A stretch of 64,000 nucleotides of DNA from Saccostrea echinata (lineage: Eukaryota), in contig NW_026889806.1 in assembly GCF_033153115.1 (NCBI RefSeq), positions 1,736,001 through 1,800,000 on the forward strand, given 5' to 3'. The notes under the pieces are model-generated. The model saw nothing but the letters and a program-made list of their open reading frames with translations. It had not been told where the DNA came from and made no database searches. Position numbers and translations under genes: made by a program. How positions within the stretch are numbered: position 1 is the stretch's first letter; every line of letters begins with the position of its first letter. This document shows positions 1,337 through 62,666 of this stretch, piece by piece.

Positions 1337-4300
1337 ATGATGTGTTTTGCAAGGTAAGGTTACTTACATTTCATTTATGTCCATCTATGCAATCAAAGTT
1401 TTCATTTACAAAAATTACAATATCCTTGGTTTTATCCACAAGGAAGAAATGAACAAAAAGGAATTGGAATTTTATTATATAACTTATTTTTTTATCTTTA
1501 CTTGAATTGTATTTTGATATATGTATTGGCATATAAAATAGCGCAATGTAAACTTTTCACAGCTATCAAAATAAAATCCATTGTTATTTGTTTAATCAAG
1601 GTTTAAATCATAATGATTAATTATATAAATAAATAAAATTATTATTTAGATTTTGAGAAAGGAACGATGGGAGATATTCTTTTATCTTCACGATATTTGC
1701 AGAGCTTTTAGCCACACATTATGTAGCAGTTTAAATCAACTAAATTAAGTGATTTTTGATATCTTAAAAAATTATATTAAAAGTATATAAAATCGGTGTA
1801 AATTTCCCACAGCTATACGTATATGGTTACGGCTTTGCTTTCAGTAGCAGCATGCTGAGACTATTTGTGGTTGCCTTCTGGACATTAACAATTGTGTTCA
1901 AACAAACACAGGGACTGTCTGCACTTGAAAATCTTCTAGCAGAGGAAACTAAAGACGATTATTTGAGGGATGTTGAAGCTGATGATTCGATGCTTGATCA
2001 GAGGGCACGGGAAGAAGGTGGGATCTAATGATATCCATTAATCTAATCCTAGAACAACATGAACAGATTAAAATATTGTTAATGGTCGCATGAGCATGTC
2101 AAAAATTACTCTATTAGTTTCTGGCTCCGACTTTCTGTTAATTTGTAAATGAATTTTGTAAATGTATCGAAATATAATGTTCAAAATTTGCGCATTAGTG
2201 TGACTTAAAAGTGCATTTTCCAAAGTACACGTCCTGATTGTTTTCAATGCGGAACGACCAATTACATATCCTTTTCGATAGTATAAACATTTAGCACGAA
2301 AAAAAACTTCGTGCCATTGAGATAATATTTTTTAAACGTTTAAAATTTTAAATTTTCCGAATGTATCAAATTTATCAATATTTATTAAATTTATCATTAA
2401 TGGACTTTTTCCAGAAAAGGTAAAGACACCTTAAAATAAGGTAAATTAATGATGTCTAGAAAATTCATCATTGTTTCTACGTTTGATAGATATTGCAAAC
2501 CAAATTTGTCGAGCATGGATGACATAAATTTCAAAATATTTGAATTACAAACTGACGCAATTTTGAATTTACTGAGGATTATTTGTGTTTTTGTTAAAGG
2601 CGTTCATTGCAGAACATTTCTTTTCAATTTAGATTTAAGAAAGCTTATTTTAAAGAAACTGCGATTTCGAGATCTTCAGAATGATTCAACAGCAGAGGGT
2701 CTCAGTAGCTTAGGTATGTATTGTCATTCTTATTTCTCTCATTAAATCGCACGGTGTAATAATTCGTTTCACTTGTCATAAAAAAAAATAACCTCTTTAA
2801 TAATAATATTTTATAATTTTTAATCTCAAATGTTTATTAGTCTTGTATATTTACACTCCATGGGCTTCCTTCGATAATTCTCGAAAAATATTTTTAAAAA
2901 TAATTTTATTTGTCAATGCAAAATAAACAAGACGTTCAGCTGCTATTTGAAAAAAAAAATAGACTAAATATATTCATGCATTTAAAAATAAACTTTAAAT
3001 ACATAATATATCGTAAAAAAATATGTATACCATTCAATTTGGCACAGACTTTCTTTGATCAATGACAATGTGCAATGCAAAAAGAGAAAGATCATTCAGT
3101 ACTAAAATATTCATAAAGAATACACTTCGGGAGTGCAAAACCGGAAGTCTTTATTCTACAATCAATAATACCTGCAAATGTCTTGGTAGAAGGAATCTAG
3201 ACATAAAATACATGAAATATTTTCATGATATATTATAAGTTGAGTTATCGTGGTAGAAGGTACTTAGCCGAGATGGGAAATGCCGGTAGACTTTGATAAT
3301 TGGATAAAATTTGTCATAATTGTATCTACTAAAATTGAACCGAATGTAAATAAATGGAAAATAATATTAATTTGAATTTTTGTTCTAGGAAAAAAGTTTC
3401 TAAGATATATTTTTTTTTAAACAATGCTCAAAATATATTTTTTACGTACTTTTGTATACCAAGGATGAAAAAGTCTCTTCACCTATTTGCTTCAGTATTT
3501 TGGTTTAATCTGCCAATTTTTTCTTCACTATGCTTAGGTGCTTTTCAGTATGCTTATTTCTCAATGACTGGACCAGATTTTGTGTACATGTTTTTTTTTT
3601 ATCGCCAGAAACAAGTGGATTTTTGTATTTTTTCCCCCGTTATTTTTATTTTATACAATGTTAATAGAAGTAAGGTTTATTTGAAGAATAATGCTTTTTT
3701 TGTTGTTGTTGTATTCATCTTAATCATAACGAACGGAAATTTAGAGATATTCCCCGCTGCACTTATGTTCTCAGAATATTGACGATGTTATAGGGTTGTA
3801 CAAAGATAAAAATGAAGAGAACAAGAAGACATTTCAAAACTGGGTATCTAGTTTAGATTTAAAAACCCCAAATGATTTTTCTGGGCTACTAGTATACTCC
3901 GACTTGCCTTTTGCATATTTTCAGTCTTTTCTCTTCTTTTTCTCTTTGTATTTTTTTTTTTGGAAGTTTCTTGTTTTAATGACAATTCTTTTCCCTATGT
4001 TTGTTGTTATTTGTGTGTGTGTGTGTGTGTGTGTGTGTGTGGAGGGGGGGGGGGTCTGTTTAATTTTGTTGTGTTGTTTTTGGTGTTTGATTTTTGTATT
4101 CATATACTGGACTATATATTACTAGTGATGTATTTTTCCTTTGTAATGCCCCGTTACCCTTTTCATTATTGCTCAATAATTAATTGATGCTTAACCCCTC
4201 TCCCCACCCCCTCTTAAGAAACTAAAGCTATTTTCAGGTCTTTGATATGACAGAGAATGTTTTTCAAAATCCAAATTTCAAATAATCAAAATCACCCCAC

Positions 4301-4626
4301 TGTGTGATATTTTAAATACTTCATATGACCTTTATATACAAAGTGGCATTTCGCTTATGGTTTCTTCTTTGAATGATCAAATCTTGTGAACTTTCTCATA
4401 ATCGTCATGTATGTTATATTAGAGTTTGGCATCAACTATGGAAACCAAACATTAAACAAAAATATAAAGTTAAAATTAATTTATTTTTCTATTTTTAGTG
4501 AAGCGAGTTCCGGATTCCTATCGATTTGGGGATTCTTTGGTGGACAAGGTGGCGGCGTTACTTCGCTTTAAAATGCGCCCAACAAAAAGTCCTCAAGTCA
4601 GGATGCCCAGTCTCCGATTTGGCTGA
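1337..4626 (+). CDS. RFamide-type neuropeptide precursor (132 aa, 4 exons), possibly 26RFa/QRFP-like
   Basis: Exons 1337-1353, 1845-2017, 2633-2713, 4499-4626; all GT-AG, phases consistent, 399 nt. Translation: MMCFASSSMLRLFVVAFWTLTIVFKQTQG-LSALENLLAEETKDDYLRDVEADDSMLDQRAREEDLRKLILKKLRFRDLQNDSTAEGLSSLV-KR-VPDSYRFGDSLVDKVAALLRFKMRPTKSPQVRMPSLRF-G*. Signal peptide, acidic propeptide, dibasic KR site and C-terminal RF-Gly amidation signal. AATAAA at 4932. Confidence 0.88.
4012..4041. repeat. (TG)n microsatellite
   Basis: About 15 TG units followed by a G-run, in intron 3 of the neuropeptide gene. Confidence 0.9.
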
Positions 4627-60842: not shown

Positions 60843-62504
60843 AAAATAGACCAAGTATAGAATCCAGAGTCTTCCACATGGACGGCAGCATGGACACTCA
60901 TCCCTTTTGTCAAAGATTTGATGCAGAAAGGCATTCCATACATTAACTCTCTTTATAGCATTTCAGATTCAGCTACATTTGACTTTATTTTAAATTGTAT
61001 TTATTTACAAGTATTTTGCTTTTTTTTTTACTTTCATAGAAATATAATGTTTATTATATTTATACGACATAATCAAACTTCAATGCAGTATTTATAATGA
61101 ATGGAGAAGTAAGGTTAACTGTTTCTGCATCTGACCAGTCTGATAAAAAAAAACTTAAATCTCTAATTAATTTATTAGTACAGATACTTTTGATTTGACA
61201 CAAAAATTGATCCACGTTTTATAAGCCATTTCCTGGAGGGACTGTGAAATTTGTACGATCTTTTTTTAATTCACATCTGGTGAATATGATACTACTGAAT
61301 ACCACAAATAAAATCAAACTCTGTGAAATAAGTTAATCTCCATATTCAGGAACATCAATATTTGAAGAAAACTTTCAGAAAATATTTTATTATGTCATTT
61401 GACATTCTTTAAATATAATTTAAAAAAATGAACAAAGTTAAAAAATGATTTCACCCACATAAAGGGGCATACATTTAACATACATGTACATTGTAATTTG
61501 TATTTATGATTCAAAATGTAACATCTGATGAAGTTTCAGTAAATTTGTACTTATTTACTGTAAGTAAACTTTGTTTAAAATCTTGAATAGTTTGGCAGAG
61601 ATGTTTTACTAAAAGTTGGTGAAAATTTTACTCAGTCCACCTTTTCTGTTTACAGTGCTTAGAATGAAAGTGGATTTTCTGTTGTTTGAAGCAGGCAATT
61701 TTTATCAAACCTTGATACAAATTGACTGAGAAATATATAATATGAAAAATTGTATGGAGGAAAAAATAATGATTAAAAGATGTACATATTAAATTCAAAA
61801 CTCTGTGACATATCAACTGGTGCATAAAAAGGAAATGCAAACGACCAATACCAACAAGCTGAATAGTTTTACACATAATAATTTGGTATTTTTTTTCTGT
61901 TACAGTACCTTGAAAATGGACAGTGTACATGTTGCAAAAGACACACTTTCACAGACATAACATGTATATTTCCTATATCCTACTTAATGATCACTTAAAA
62001 CAGTATTACTTATTATACAGTCTACATACACGTACATGTAAATTTGTAATGTATGAAACAAGTATTGGATATGGATGGACAGCATTGAAAATTAAATAAG
62101 AAACAAGATTCAAAAATCTCTGCACATATCAGGATTATAAAAGCAAAACCTGACCAAAAAATTCTAATAAACTCCCTCCTCAACCTAGACTATTATACAT
62201 GTAGAAAAGATTAACTACAATTTAATTTAACATGATGAAACAAAAAATATCTTCATTCTTAATTCCTTGTCACAGGAAAGCATCCCATACATGAACTCAA
62301 CAGCAATGATTACGTGAGATCAGTTTAGCAAATTCATTTACACTGTACATCCACTTGTACAATGTATTTAACAGAGTCTTGCTTATGGTTGGACAAAAAA
62401 AAAATGAATTCTTTTTGTGTACTTGTCCAGTATTGATTTAAAATGGCATTGTTTTTGATAACTGATCCTTAAAAAACGAAATAATTTCACTCCTAAGAAC
62501 TTCA

Positions 62505-62666
62505 TCATAACTCATCCCTCAAAATCGTATATCTATTTCTAGAGGGGGCAAGTTTCCTGAAGGTTGACTCGGGAGGGGATGTAGGCTGTTTGGGGGCATT
62601 GTCTCTGTTGACATCGTGGGGGATATGGTCAGTTTTTTGTTCCTGTTTCTCTTCAGCATTATCAGA
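62505..62666 (-). CDS. ERP44: Last coding exon of endoplasmic reticulum resident protein 44 (gene continues beyond the window)
   Basis: Acceptor TTTCAG at 62667, then SDNAEEKQEQKTDHIPHDVNRDNAPKQPTSPPESTFRKLAPSRNRYTILRDEL*. This matches the ERp44 C-terminal tail (SPPES.F.KLAPS..RYT.LR..DEL) and has an RDEL retrieval signal. Too short to appear in the ORF track. Confidence 0.9.
   Translation of the reverse strand, partial: SDNAEEKQEQKTDHIPHDVNRDNAPKQPTSPPESTFRKLAPSRNRYTILRDEL

Follow-up and report, generated by a model that had tools for sequence, protein, structure and literature searches.

Does the RFamide precursor gene at this locus of the oyster Saccostrea echinata represent the lophotrochozoan counterpart of QRFP? 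A sequence-only reading of the window (the whole 64,000-nucleotide stretch analysed here) had proposed that it does, arguing from a gene block that mirrors human 9q31-34. We found that the gene block and its linkage stand, whereas the orthology drawn from them is no more than a candidate reading: searches by sequence and by profile found nothing in common between the precursor and QRFP, and the linkage holds at chromosome scale only.

An SLRFamide precursor and its family

The gene (1337 to 4626, plus strand) is an SLRFamide (LRF) neuropeptide precursor gene with four coding exons at 1337-1353, 1845-2017, 2633-2713 and 4499-4626 (stop included). Translated in order, these exons are identical, exon by exon, to the NCBI-annotated protein P0001 (132 aa), bearing out the earlier description of a 132-aa precursor with a single long C-terminal RFamide. 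All three introns are GT..AG, and the split codons encode S, D and V. Reading from the sequence, we recognised a hydrophobic, signal-peptide-like N-terminal segment (1852 to 1914, plus strand) that starts at the second in-frame ATG, at 1852; aligned hydrophobic N-termini are present in 27 family members, and residues 4-26 are modelled as helix by AlphaFold2. Alignments of family members revealed a conserved mid-precursor block, DLRKLILKKLRFRDL (2633 to 2680, plus strand), in which RFR is invariant across 27 aligned members and which in scallop is in print as a predicted peptide, GQDLRKLILKKLRF (PMC5996578). The C-terminal region (4501 to 4623, plus strand) reads as a KR cleavage site, the 38-residue peptide VPDSYRFGDSLVDKVAALLRFKMRPTKSPQVRMPSLRF, a Gly amidation donor and the stop, and in Pacific oyster the C-terminal SLRFamide peptide has been detected by mass spectrometry (PMC8398477). 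AlphaFold2 run on the family alignment predicts a helix at residues 99-115 and coil from there to the C-terminus, with low confidence (mean pLDDT 63).

We found 12 relatives of P0001, among them a scallop protein named LRF in UniRef, with identities of 76-82% to other oysters and 53-58% (local) to scallops. Compared with published bivalve LRF/SLRFamide precursors, the window gene has the same layout of about 130 aa, an identical DLRKLILKKLRF block and an identical VRMPSLRF-Gly end; there is no difference in kind, and the gene is the orthologue in another oyster. By its sequence it belongs to the "LRF"/"SLRFamide" family of precursors, already in print as scallop 'LRF' (PMC5996578, 2018) and Pacific oyster Cragi-SLRFamide (PMC8398477, 2021), and is not new in kind.

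What is new here is the range of this family, which has been described as bivalve-specific (PMC8398477), while annelid SLRFamide orthologues have been described for annelids alone (PMC7737342). Among 1.84 billion representatives, a bivalve-only profile matched 30 proteins at E<=1e-3, including proteins of gastropods (Babylonia, Patella, Gigantopelta, Haliotis, Plakobranchus, Pomacea, Aplysia and Lymnaea) and annelids (Capitella, and Urechis 'SLRFamide'). A wider profile matched 36 proteins, every named one from a mollusc or annelid, and no named non-lophotrochozoan was found among the 30 or the 36. Because the family profile also matches proteins of gastropods and the "SLRFamide" of annelids, the family as delimited by these matches extends over molluscs and annelids and is neither bivalve-only nor annelid-only. 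The SLRFamide of Urechis unicinctus (QUP52032.1) scores E 4.6e-6 with the bivalve-only profile and E 2.8e-24 with the wider one; it contains the two conserved blocks common to the oyster family and a KR followed by a 32-residue C-terminal peptide, whose tail is GVKLQSLRF-amide as against VRMPSLRF-amide in oyster. Each of the 41 full-length relatives that were counted has an LRFG C-terminus and an upstream dibasic site, and KR is the last such site in 36 of them.

The Capitella member carries the UniRef name 'Corticotropin-releasing factor domain-containing protein', which would suggest a CRF/DH44-like family. CRF likewise has a layout with a single C-terminal helical amidated peptide, of about 30-40 residues. 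We consider this identity extremely improbable, as the Capitella protein matches no Pfam family at E<=10 and the other nine scanned members also lack a CRF match in Pfam. To our knowledge, CRF-type peptides never end in RFamide. Lophotrochozoans also have separate DH44/ELH receptor groups (PMC8557429).

Gene order and the ancestral linkage group

The window contains, in order, the RFamide precursor, a secreted-looking gene, a C2-PDZ-RhoGEF gene, AK8, SURF4, TADA1 and ERP44 (3' end), and exon translations together with Pfam and PDB matches confirm both the order and the strands claimed earlier. The second secreted-looking gene, called the orphan precursor (11689 to 15333, plus strand, from ORFs), has a signal-peptide-like exon in ORF 11668-11811 and its last exon in ORF 14887-15330 (plus strand). 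It has no Pfam match, an Atlas search was blank, and its hhalign comparison with the SLRFamide family aligned the four residues LRFG and nothing more (probability 0.4%).

The GEF gene (18841 to 28346, plus strand, limits approximate) has RGS3-like C2 and PDZ exons followed by RhoGEF/PH-like exons. Supporting the RGS3-like module of the sequence-only reading, the best PDB matches of the C2 exon (24436-24744) and the PDZ exon (25053-25289) are the RGS3 C2 domain (3fbk, E 7.6e-10) and the RGS3 PDZ domain (1whd, E 0.007); the RhoGEF match at 26827-27051 is weak (Pfam E 0.011). Unlike vertebrate RGS3, the gene lacks an RGS domain; it is thus related to RGS3 through its domains and is no plain orthologue. 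As a marker, of what we take to be 9q32, it carries less weight than AK8 or SURF4. It shares its architecture of C2, PDZ and then RhoGEF-like exons with PsGEF, a protostome-specific C2-PDZ-RhoGEF derived from an RGS3-like C2-PDZ ancestor (PMC2684095).

AK8 (adenylate kinase 8, two kinase domains; 32142 to 37712, plus strand) was identified from Pfam ADK matches on ORFs 32461-32655 and 37374-37712 and from exon ORF 33672-33938, whose best PDB match is 'Adenylate kinase 8' (E 6.2e-6). Two 3' exons of SURF4 (39942 to 41560, minus strand; 5' exon not located) match Pfam at E 7e-72 (profile positions 115-267) and E 1.5e-35 (positions 14-102). The SAGA subunit gene TADA1 (44682 to 55077, plus strand, limits approximate) was placed by two exons whose best PDB match is Transcriptional adapter 1, in ORF 53095-53307 (E 0.003, weak) and ORF 47655-47807 (E 0.79, not significant). 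ERP44 (3' end at 62505 to 64000, minus strand) has its last exon at 62508-62675 (minus strand), with an RDEL end and best PDB matches to ERp44 (E 2.8e-5); the remainder continues past the window's end for as much as about 6 kb, with a thioredoxin exon in flank L011 (Pfam E 4.8e-7). In the left flank, mitoguardin has a single locus (C57:1719038-1723726), 12.4 kb from the SLRFamide gene with no assembly gap between. The right flank contains a valyl-tRNA synthetase read by eye, with a Pfam editing-domain match (E 5.5e-5), and an innexin, and the flank search also placed RPS5 among the neighbours.

Assignment of these neighbours to the human proto-MHC paralogon comes from the literature for AK8 and SURF4 and is our assumption for MIGA2, TADA1 and VARS1. 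ERP44 and RGS3, which we take to be at 9q31 and 9q32, fall beyond the core printed as 9q33.2-34.3, and RPS5, presumably at 19q13.4, does not fit the paralogon; the sequence-only reading had likewise assumed 9q34 for QRFP, AK8 and SURF4 and 1q24 for TADA1. On these presumed positions, five of the eight assignable neighbours are on human 9q31-34, for a binomial tail of 3.4e-7 if, as we assume, 2.3% of human genes lie there. In print, human AK8 maps to 9q34.13 and SURF4 lies on its distal side (PMC5571153), and a pig gene list has QRFP about 2.3 Mb from AK8-SURF4 (PMC13403683). ABL adjoins QRFP in the pig list; the oyster ABL family is on another contig.

We searched the oyster genome for eight 9q34 marker families and found SURF1 and MED22 on the window's 8.9-Mb contig, so that two of the eight fall on a contig making up 0.97% of the genome (binomial tail 0.0025). 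The other six (ABL, TSC1, ASS1, SURF2, SURF6 and a GPR107-type gene) are on other contigs, and linkage is for that reason informative at chromosome scale alone: it locates the SLRFamide gene on QRFP's ancestral chromosome and no closer. In a 2026 amphioxus study, one ancestral chromosome corresponds to human 1q23-25, 6p21.3, 9q33-34 and 19p13 (PMC13012124). Together with the flanking mitoguardin and valyl-tRNA synthetase and with SURF1 and MED22 on the contig, this supports the proposed ancestral 9q/1q (proto-MHC) linkage group, and the genes around the precursor are a genuine remnant of the group from which human 9q33-34/1q23-25/6p21.3/19p13 arose. Leaving QRFP orthology out, an SLRFamide precursor gene set in such a remnant is the best explanation of the locus, and we hold it to be probable.

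The join of the RFamide/orphan pair to the GEF-AK8-SURF4 side runs across the sole N run in the window, an intergenic assembly gap of 166 N (16302 to 16467) that separates the orphan gene from the GEF gene and touches no recognised exon. This single gap of estimated length separates the RFamide gene from AK8-SURF4-ERP44, and copies of a poly-C repeat flank it on both sides, as might be expected if their linkage were an assembly artefact. The RFamide gene, however, is joined to mitoguardin on its left without any N, and SURF1 is on the same contig on the mitoguardin side, which makes an artefact highly unlikely. Window positions 1-16301 with 100 kb upstream, and 16468-64000 with 100 kb downstream, are N-free.

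Candidate relationships of the SLRFamide family

The SLRFamide family may be the lophotrochozoan QRFP (26RFa/43RFa) orthologue and the ligand of the orphan QRFP-receptor clade. Its gene is in QRFP's ancestral linkage group, and the oyster order mitoguardin-SLRFamide-AK8-SURF4 parallels what we take to be the human order MIGA2-QRFP-AK8-SURF4. On the other side, ABL, ASS1 and TSC1 are near QRFP or AK8 in mammals and on other contigs in oyster. An order shared by three or four genes can also be chance, because amphioxus proto-MHC genes are scattered and heavily reshuffled in order (PMC13012124). QRFP-type receptors are present yet orphan in lophotrochozoans (PMC4062910; PMC8557429), and their phyletic pattern (PMC4062910) agrees with a family found in molluscs and annelids and in no named ecdysozoan among the 30 or 36 matches. 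A 'QRFP-like peptide receptor' transcript has been reported for Saccostrea echinata, the species of the identical protein P0001 (PMC12564202).

In layout, SLRFamide resembles chordate QRFP/26RFa/43RFa, with a precursor of about 130 aa that ends in a single long amidated RF peptide at the extreme C-terminus. The predicted short N-terminal coil, amphipathic helix and flexible RFamide tail recall the NMR structure of 26RFa (PMC4058657). The distance from helix to end is 16 residues in SLRFamide compared to 9 in QRFP, the SLRFamide precursor has its extra invariant mid-precursor block, and the conserved GGFSFRF tail is absent, the window having MPSLRF instead. Comparing by eye, we observed that the Haliotis peptide QKMLVSNLAALLSGLKQRQAEPNMRMPSLRF (P0022) and human 26RFa TSGPLGNLAEELNGYSRKKGGFSFRF (PMC4058657) have N7, L8, A9, L12 and G14 in common at matching positions counted from the cleavage site, and that a 5-residue gap brings S, R and F at the end into agreement; L8, A9 and L12 are hydrophobic face residues of 26RFa (PMC4058657). 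The motif NLA..L.G is absent from the six-frame translation of the window and loci (543,912 residues) and present in 6 of 41 family members. This match was nevertheless chosen after looking and is exact in gastropods only (those 6 of 41), and amphipathic helices in general show an i, i+3, i+4, i+7 hydrophobic pattern, so the helix motif resemblance is suggestive only.

Profile searches gave no link to QRFP. Of ten SLRFamide members scanned with Pfam at E<=10, none matched RFamide_26RFa or another neuropeptide family, a whole-genome search with RFamide_26RFa had no match at the window, and the SLRFamide profile matched no QRFP chain at E<=10 among PDB sequences, a set that may not include one. 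A language-model look-alike list ranks QRFP 11, behind DH31 and NPFF. QRFP orthology is the best single candidate, reasonable but unproven, and we propose it tentatively, with the balance against it.

The family could also be a lophotrochozoan kisspeptin-type peptide, which we consider unlikely. The N-W-N-x-F part of kisspeptin has no counterpart in SLRFamide, we know of no kisspeptin parallel to the long helical N-terminal half, and KISS1, which we take to be at human 1q32, would belong to a different paralogon from the 9q34 group. The S-L-R-F-amide end does resemble the G-L-R-F-amide of human kisspeptin (PMC4058657, Table 1), and lophotrochozoans possess kisspeptin-type receptors that are orphan (PMC4062910; PMC8557429).

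Close to an even prospect, in our estimation, is that SLRFamide lacks any counterpart that can be recognised in deuterostomes, or that it acts through a receptor outside the QRFPR clade; its 9q34-like place would then be uninformative on ancestry. Both printed descriptions treat the family as lineage-restricted (PMC8398477; PMC7737342), RFamide C-termini have been termed convergent (PMC4062910), and by our own estimate about one gene in twenty would be in the linkage group by chance; the confinement of named profile matches to lophotrochozoans and the lack of similarity to Pfam neuropeptide families point the same way. Against this, it would be economical to pair an RFamide ligand with an RFamide-type receptor clade when both are orphan and have equal reported phyletic ranges, and orthology predicts linkage with the QRFP region.

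Proposed processing and action

From the sequence and its relatives, we propose that the signal peptide is removed from the SLRFamide precursor, that a prohormone convertase cleaves after the conserved KR and that the C-terminal Gly is converted to an amide. The modelled product would be 38 residues long, its N-terminal half (DSLVDKVAALLRFK) helical and its tail flexible up to the MPSLRF-amide end, and a rhodopsin-type peptide receptor is its putative target. The precursor would have a putative second functional element in its invariant mid-precursor block. Because linkage sets the gene on QRFP's ancestral chromosome, the QRFP-receptor clade would be the best single candidate receptor for SLRFamide, though with a minority chance of being the right one.

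The RFamide gene and its precursor family

The RFamide gene (1337-4626, + strand) has coding exons at 1337-1353, 1845-2017, 2633-2713 and 4499-4626, whose translations are consecutive pieces of P0001, a 132-aa database protein listed at NCBI as uncharacterised in Saccostrea echinata. The introns (491, 615 and 1785 bases) each run GT..AG, and the three split codons supply the residues between the exon pieces; full-length queries used P0001 as given in the database, and the exons were never spliced together for searching. The precursor starts with a stretch that appears hydrophobic by eye, aligns with the N-termini of its relatives and is a putative signal peptide. 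This is followed by an acidic spacer, an invariant block DLRKLILKKLRFRDL, a KR site (4501-4506), a 38-residue peptide closing in MPSLRF, and then Gly and stop. The exon at 2633-2713 encodes a conserved mid-precursor block, DLRKLILKKLRF, with RFR invariant in all 27 aligned family members. AlphaFold2 run on the family alignment predicted, with low confidence (mean pLDDT 63), a helix at residues 99-115 and coil from there on.

P0001 matched a scallop protein named LRF by UniRef (E 4.2e-10), and its search returned 12 proteins from oysters, scallops and one mussel. We built a profile from ten of these 12 bivalve proteins and searched it against 1.84 billion representatives, recovering 30 proteins at E<=1e-3. 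Their named sources include gastropods (Babylonia with two copies, Patella, Gigantopelta, Haliotis, Plakobranchus, Pomacea, Aplysia and Lymnaea) as well as Pinctada, a freshwater mussel and two annelids, Capitella and Urechis. A second, wider profile built on 27 sequences found 36 proteins, adding four heterodont bivalves and the annelid Ridgeia. The Urechis protein, 'SLRFamide', was matched at E 4.6e-6 by the ten-sequence profile and at 2.8e-24 by the 27-sequence profile, and all named profile matches were molluscs or annelids.

We counted motifs on 41 of the 56 proteins fetched. Among the 15 left out (P0005-7, P0016-18, P0032, P0033, P0038, P0039, P0041 and P0053-56), P0005 is almost complete (123 aa, with the peptide region as in P0004) and the remaining 14 comprise fragments, wrongly called ORFs and a fusion. 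Every counted member ends in LRFG, KR is the last dibasic site upstream in 36/41, and the predicted C-terminal peptides are 28-38 residues long, apart from one length produced artificially by the script's rule. Two paralogous precursors (P0014 and P0015) occur in the gastropod Babylonia areolata. In the annelid-like relatives P0051 and P0052 the C-terminal peptide stands in two tandem copies, the first of which is probably not amidated because it ends ...RLPTLRF-Ala and has no Gly.

By sequence, the RFamide gene is placed in the already published SLRFamide/LRF family, and the profile matches show that this family is pan-mollusc and annelid, a wider range than the one in print. In a scallop neuropeptidome, LRF is a novel precursor with the peptides GQDLRKLILKKLRF and QISDSPSVRMPSLRFamide (PMC5996578). 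The Pacific oyster 'Cragi-SLRFamide' family is termed bivalve-specific in its own report, which also describes a C-terminal SLRFamide peptide seen by mass spectrometry in Crassostrea gigas and expression chiefly in larvae (PMC8398477), and the Urechis SLRFamide paper found orthologues only in annelids (PMC7737342). Two families printed apart as bivalve-only and annelid-only are here united into one.

We also considered two other family assignments. The Capitella protein P0023 is named 'Corticotropin-releasing factor domain-containing protein' by UniRef; a CRF/DH44 reading was rejected because no Pfam CRF match was found at E<=10 in the ten scanned members, the Capitella protein included. A kisspeptin reading is unlikely: only L-R-F is common with the printed kisspeptin-10, and neither the F-G-L-R-F/Y-amide ending nor the N-W-N-x-F core was found.

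Gene order in the window and its flanks

The window (C57:1736001-1800000 of a 923-Mb assembly) is animal DNA rich in AT (GC fraction 0.29-0.36), and its genes were named by six-frame ORFs, Pfam and PDB sequence searches. These agree with the order given by the sequence-only reading: RFamide (+), an orphan secreted-looking gene (+), a C2-PDZ-RhoGEF gene (+), AK8 (+), SURF4 (-), TADA1 (+) and the last exon of ERP44 (-). SURF4 was matched by Pfam at E 7e-72. Run on single exon ORFs, Pfam gave no match for the C2, PDZ, DH, PH, TADA1, ERP44 or orphan exons, and PDB searches then named most of them. The top PDB match of the AK8 exon was 'Adenylate kinase 8' (E 6.2e-6), the ERP44 tail was matched at E 2.8e-5, and the TADA1 exons had weak matches (E 0.003 and 0.79).

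In the GEF gene (18841..28346, +) the C2 exon had RGS3 C2 as its top PDB match (E 7.6e-10), the PDZ exon weakly matched an RGS3 PDZ structure (E 0.007) and the RhoGEF domain had a weak Pfam match (E 0.011); a PDB sequence search with the DH exon at 25794-26231 gave chance matches only. In the ORF listing C2, PDZ and RhoGEF stand in PsGEF order, and the gene has the same C2-PDZ-RhoGEF architecture as PsGEF. The authors who described PsGEF call it protostome-specific, report a short form resembling vertebrate RGS3, and trace its origin to an RGS3-like ancestor into which RhoGEF exons were captured (PMC2684095).

The orphan gene (11689..15333, +) was ruled out as a tandem duplicate of the RFamide gene, since LRFG was all that hhalign aligned, and an Atlas search returned no match to it. 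Between it and the GEF gene lies the sole N run of the window (16302-16467), outside every recognised exon; the rest of the window and the adjoining 100 kb on each side are free of N. Both flanks of the gap (16100-16600) hold copies of a long poly-C repeat, GGGGTCTGGAACCCCC... and GGGGTGGACAGCCCACCCC..., and poly-Pro/poly-Gly ORF pieces like this repeat recur over the window and its flanks. Retroelement ORF fragments resembling reverse transcriptase occur between genes at 9366-9710 (-) and, in fetched loci of the upstream flank, at L002:9607-9999 to L003:3-866, L004:8869-9998 and L006:5854-8402.

We extended the gene order over 100 kb on each side in the same genome. The left flank carries LRP-like gene exons, RPS5, Kazal and Sushi domain exons, and then mitoguardin (Pfam Miga), a single locus at 1719038-1723726 of the window's contig, C57, head to head with the RFamide gene and about 12.4 kb from it. 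The right flank holds the rest of ERP44, then valyl-tRNA synthetase (by eye; Pfam editing domain E 5.5e-5), and then a single-exon innexin gene on the - strand about 58 kb downstream of the window (L016:8684-9910; 409-aa ORF, Pfam E 1.5e-104).

Linkage to the 9q34 and proto-MHC group

Besides AK8 and SURF4, we take the human positions to be 9q34.11 for MIGA2, 9q32 for RGS3, 9q31 for ERP44, 1q24 for TADA1, 6p21.33 for VARS1 and 19q13.4 for RPS5. With these positions, those of AK8 and SURF4, and assumed gene shares, 9q31-34 holds five of the eight assignable neighbours (tail 3.4e-7), and 7/8 lie in or beside the 1q/6p/9q paralogon (tail 2.1e-8). Published maps place AK8 at human 9q34.13 with SURF4 distal to it (PMC5571153), and in the pig the block ABL1-QRFP-FIBCD1-LAMC3 shares a chromosome with AK8...SURF4 at a distance of about 2.3 Mb (PMC13403683). 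According to a 2026 amphioxus study, a single amphioxus chromosome corresponds to human 1q23.3-25.3, 6p21.33-31, 9q33.2-34.3 and 19p13, with the counterparts scattered along it and their order reshuffled (PMC13012124). The earlier description of the window as a relic of an ancestral linkage group therefore stands, because its neighbours fit the paralogon and one amphioxus chromosome corresponds to it (PMC13012124).

Eight Pfam families, each marking a single 9q34 gene, were searched across the genome. C57 makes up 0.97% of the genome and carries two of the eight markers (tail 0.0025). For a QRFP assignment, linkage points both ways: AK8, SURF4 and mitoguardin share C57 with SURF1 (at 0.57 Mb) and MED22 (at 2.86 Mb), but at contig level, which is not chromosome level, TSC1 and SURF2 are placed on C4, ASS1 and SURF6 on C25, ABL on C43 and a GPR107-type gene on C9. 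Since these marker counterparts sit on other contigs, the mammalian nearest neighbours of QRFP are not near the RFamide gene. The sharing of C4 by SURF2 and TSC1 (Hamartin), with exons within about 80 kb of each other (C4:9562091-9641602), and of C25 by ASS1 and SURF6, points to several small islands of 9q34 counterparts in the genome. The linkage evidence is membership of one ancestral chromosome, not microsynteny, and by our estimate roughly one gene in twenty shares it. The human order MIGA2 - QRFP - AK8 - SURF4 matches oyster mitoguardin - RFamide - AK8 - SURF4; with so much reshuffling, this match can be chance.

SLRFamide as a candidate QRFP-type ligand

The sequence-only reading had proposed that the RFamide gene is the orthologue of QRFP. 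We regard this as a fair, testable proposal and not a result, and lean somewhat against it. In QRFP the peptide lies at the C-terminal end of its precursor, and a single RFamide peptide at that end, as had been pointed out, is seen in P0001 and its relatives. Chordate QRFP precursors have a single peptide copy (PMC4062910). Compared by eye with human 26RFa as printed in PMC4058657, the Haliotis peptide has N7, L8, A9, L12 and G14 in the same register and S-x-R-F at its end; three of these residues, L8, A9 and L12, form part of the hydrophobic side of the 26RFa helix (PMC4058657). Against the helix face L5, L8, A9 and L12 of 26RFa, the family has V/L, L/V, A and L (by eye). The motif NLA..L.G does not occur in six-frame translations of the window and loci (543,912 residues), but it was picked post hoc and just 6/41 family members carry it exactly. 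Of the Leu, Ala, Lys and Gly named as conserved by Elphick and Mirabeau, by eye the Lys position is a near-invariant Arg in the family and the Gly is unmatched.

Searches with known QRFP and other neuropeptide models speak against orthology. None of ten family members matched Pfam RFamide_26RFa (PF11109) or any neuropeptide family at E<=10, and the family profile found no QRFP chain among PDB sequences. QRFP came eleventh in a language-model list of look-alikes that returned many neuropeptide families and was non-discriminating. The QRFP tail GGFSFRF-amide is absent: the RFamide gene has RMPSLRF-Gly, in which S at -3, R and F are the only residues in common with human 26RFa as printed. A genome-wide scan with RFamide_26RFa gave two weak matches (E 6.4 and 8.8), none in the window. 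The first, an ORF at C6:8685062-8685133 (+; L021:4062-4133) reading ...HRKKGGFIFRF-TNK, is like the RKKGGFSFRF end of human 26RFa at 9/10 residues (PMC4058657); its RF is followed by Thr, not Gly, the ORF has no signal peptide and the DNA is of low complexity, and we took it for chance.

Published surveys place QRFP-type and kisspeptin-type receptors in lophotrochozoans, with none in ecdysozoans, and give the ligands of both as unknown; for the QRFP-type receptors, which are conserved in molluscs and annelids, this entry dates back to 2014 or earlier (PMC4062910; PMC8557429). The phyletic range of the SLRFamide family matches the range reported for these receptors, and the transcripts listed for S. 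echinata include a 'QRFP-like peptide receptor' (PMC12564202). An Aplysia paper of 2026 continues to place QRFP among the deuterostome families, and its Venn-diagram legend gives only CCK and NPY as common to invertebrates and vertebrates (PMC13485628). In the literature searched, we found no published link between SLRFamide and QRFP and no named lophotrochozoan QRFP ligand.

The SLRFamide family may be the long-missing protostome QRFP-type ligand, still in the proto-MHC group between mitoguardin and AK8, much as human QRFP stands between MIGA2 and AK8 at 9q34, and keeping the N-L-A-x-x-L-x-G helix core of 26RFa, a possibility we put forward tentatively and on the doubtful side of even. The family offers defined amidated peptides of 31-38 residues for one concrete and cheap test on the QRFP-receptor clade. 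If the pairing holds, synteny would have rescued an orthology beyond the reach of sequence alone, and the ligand side of QRFP signalling would be traceable to the bilaterian ancestor.
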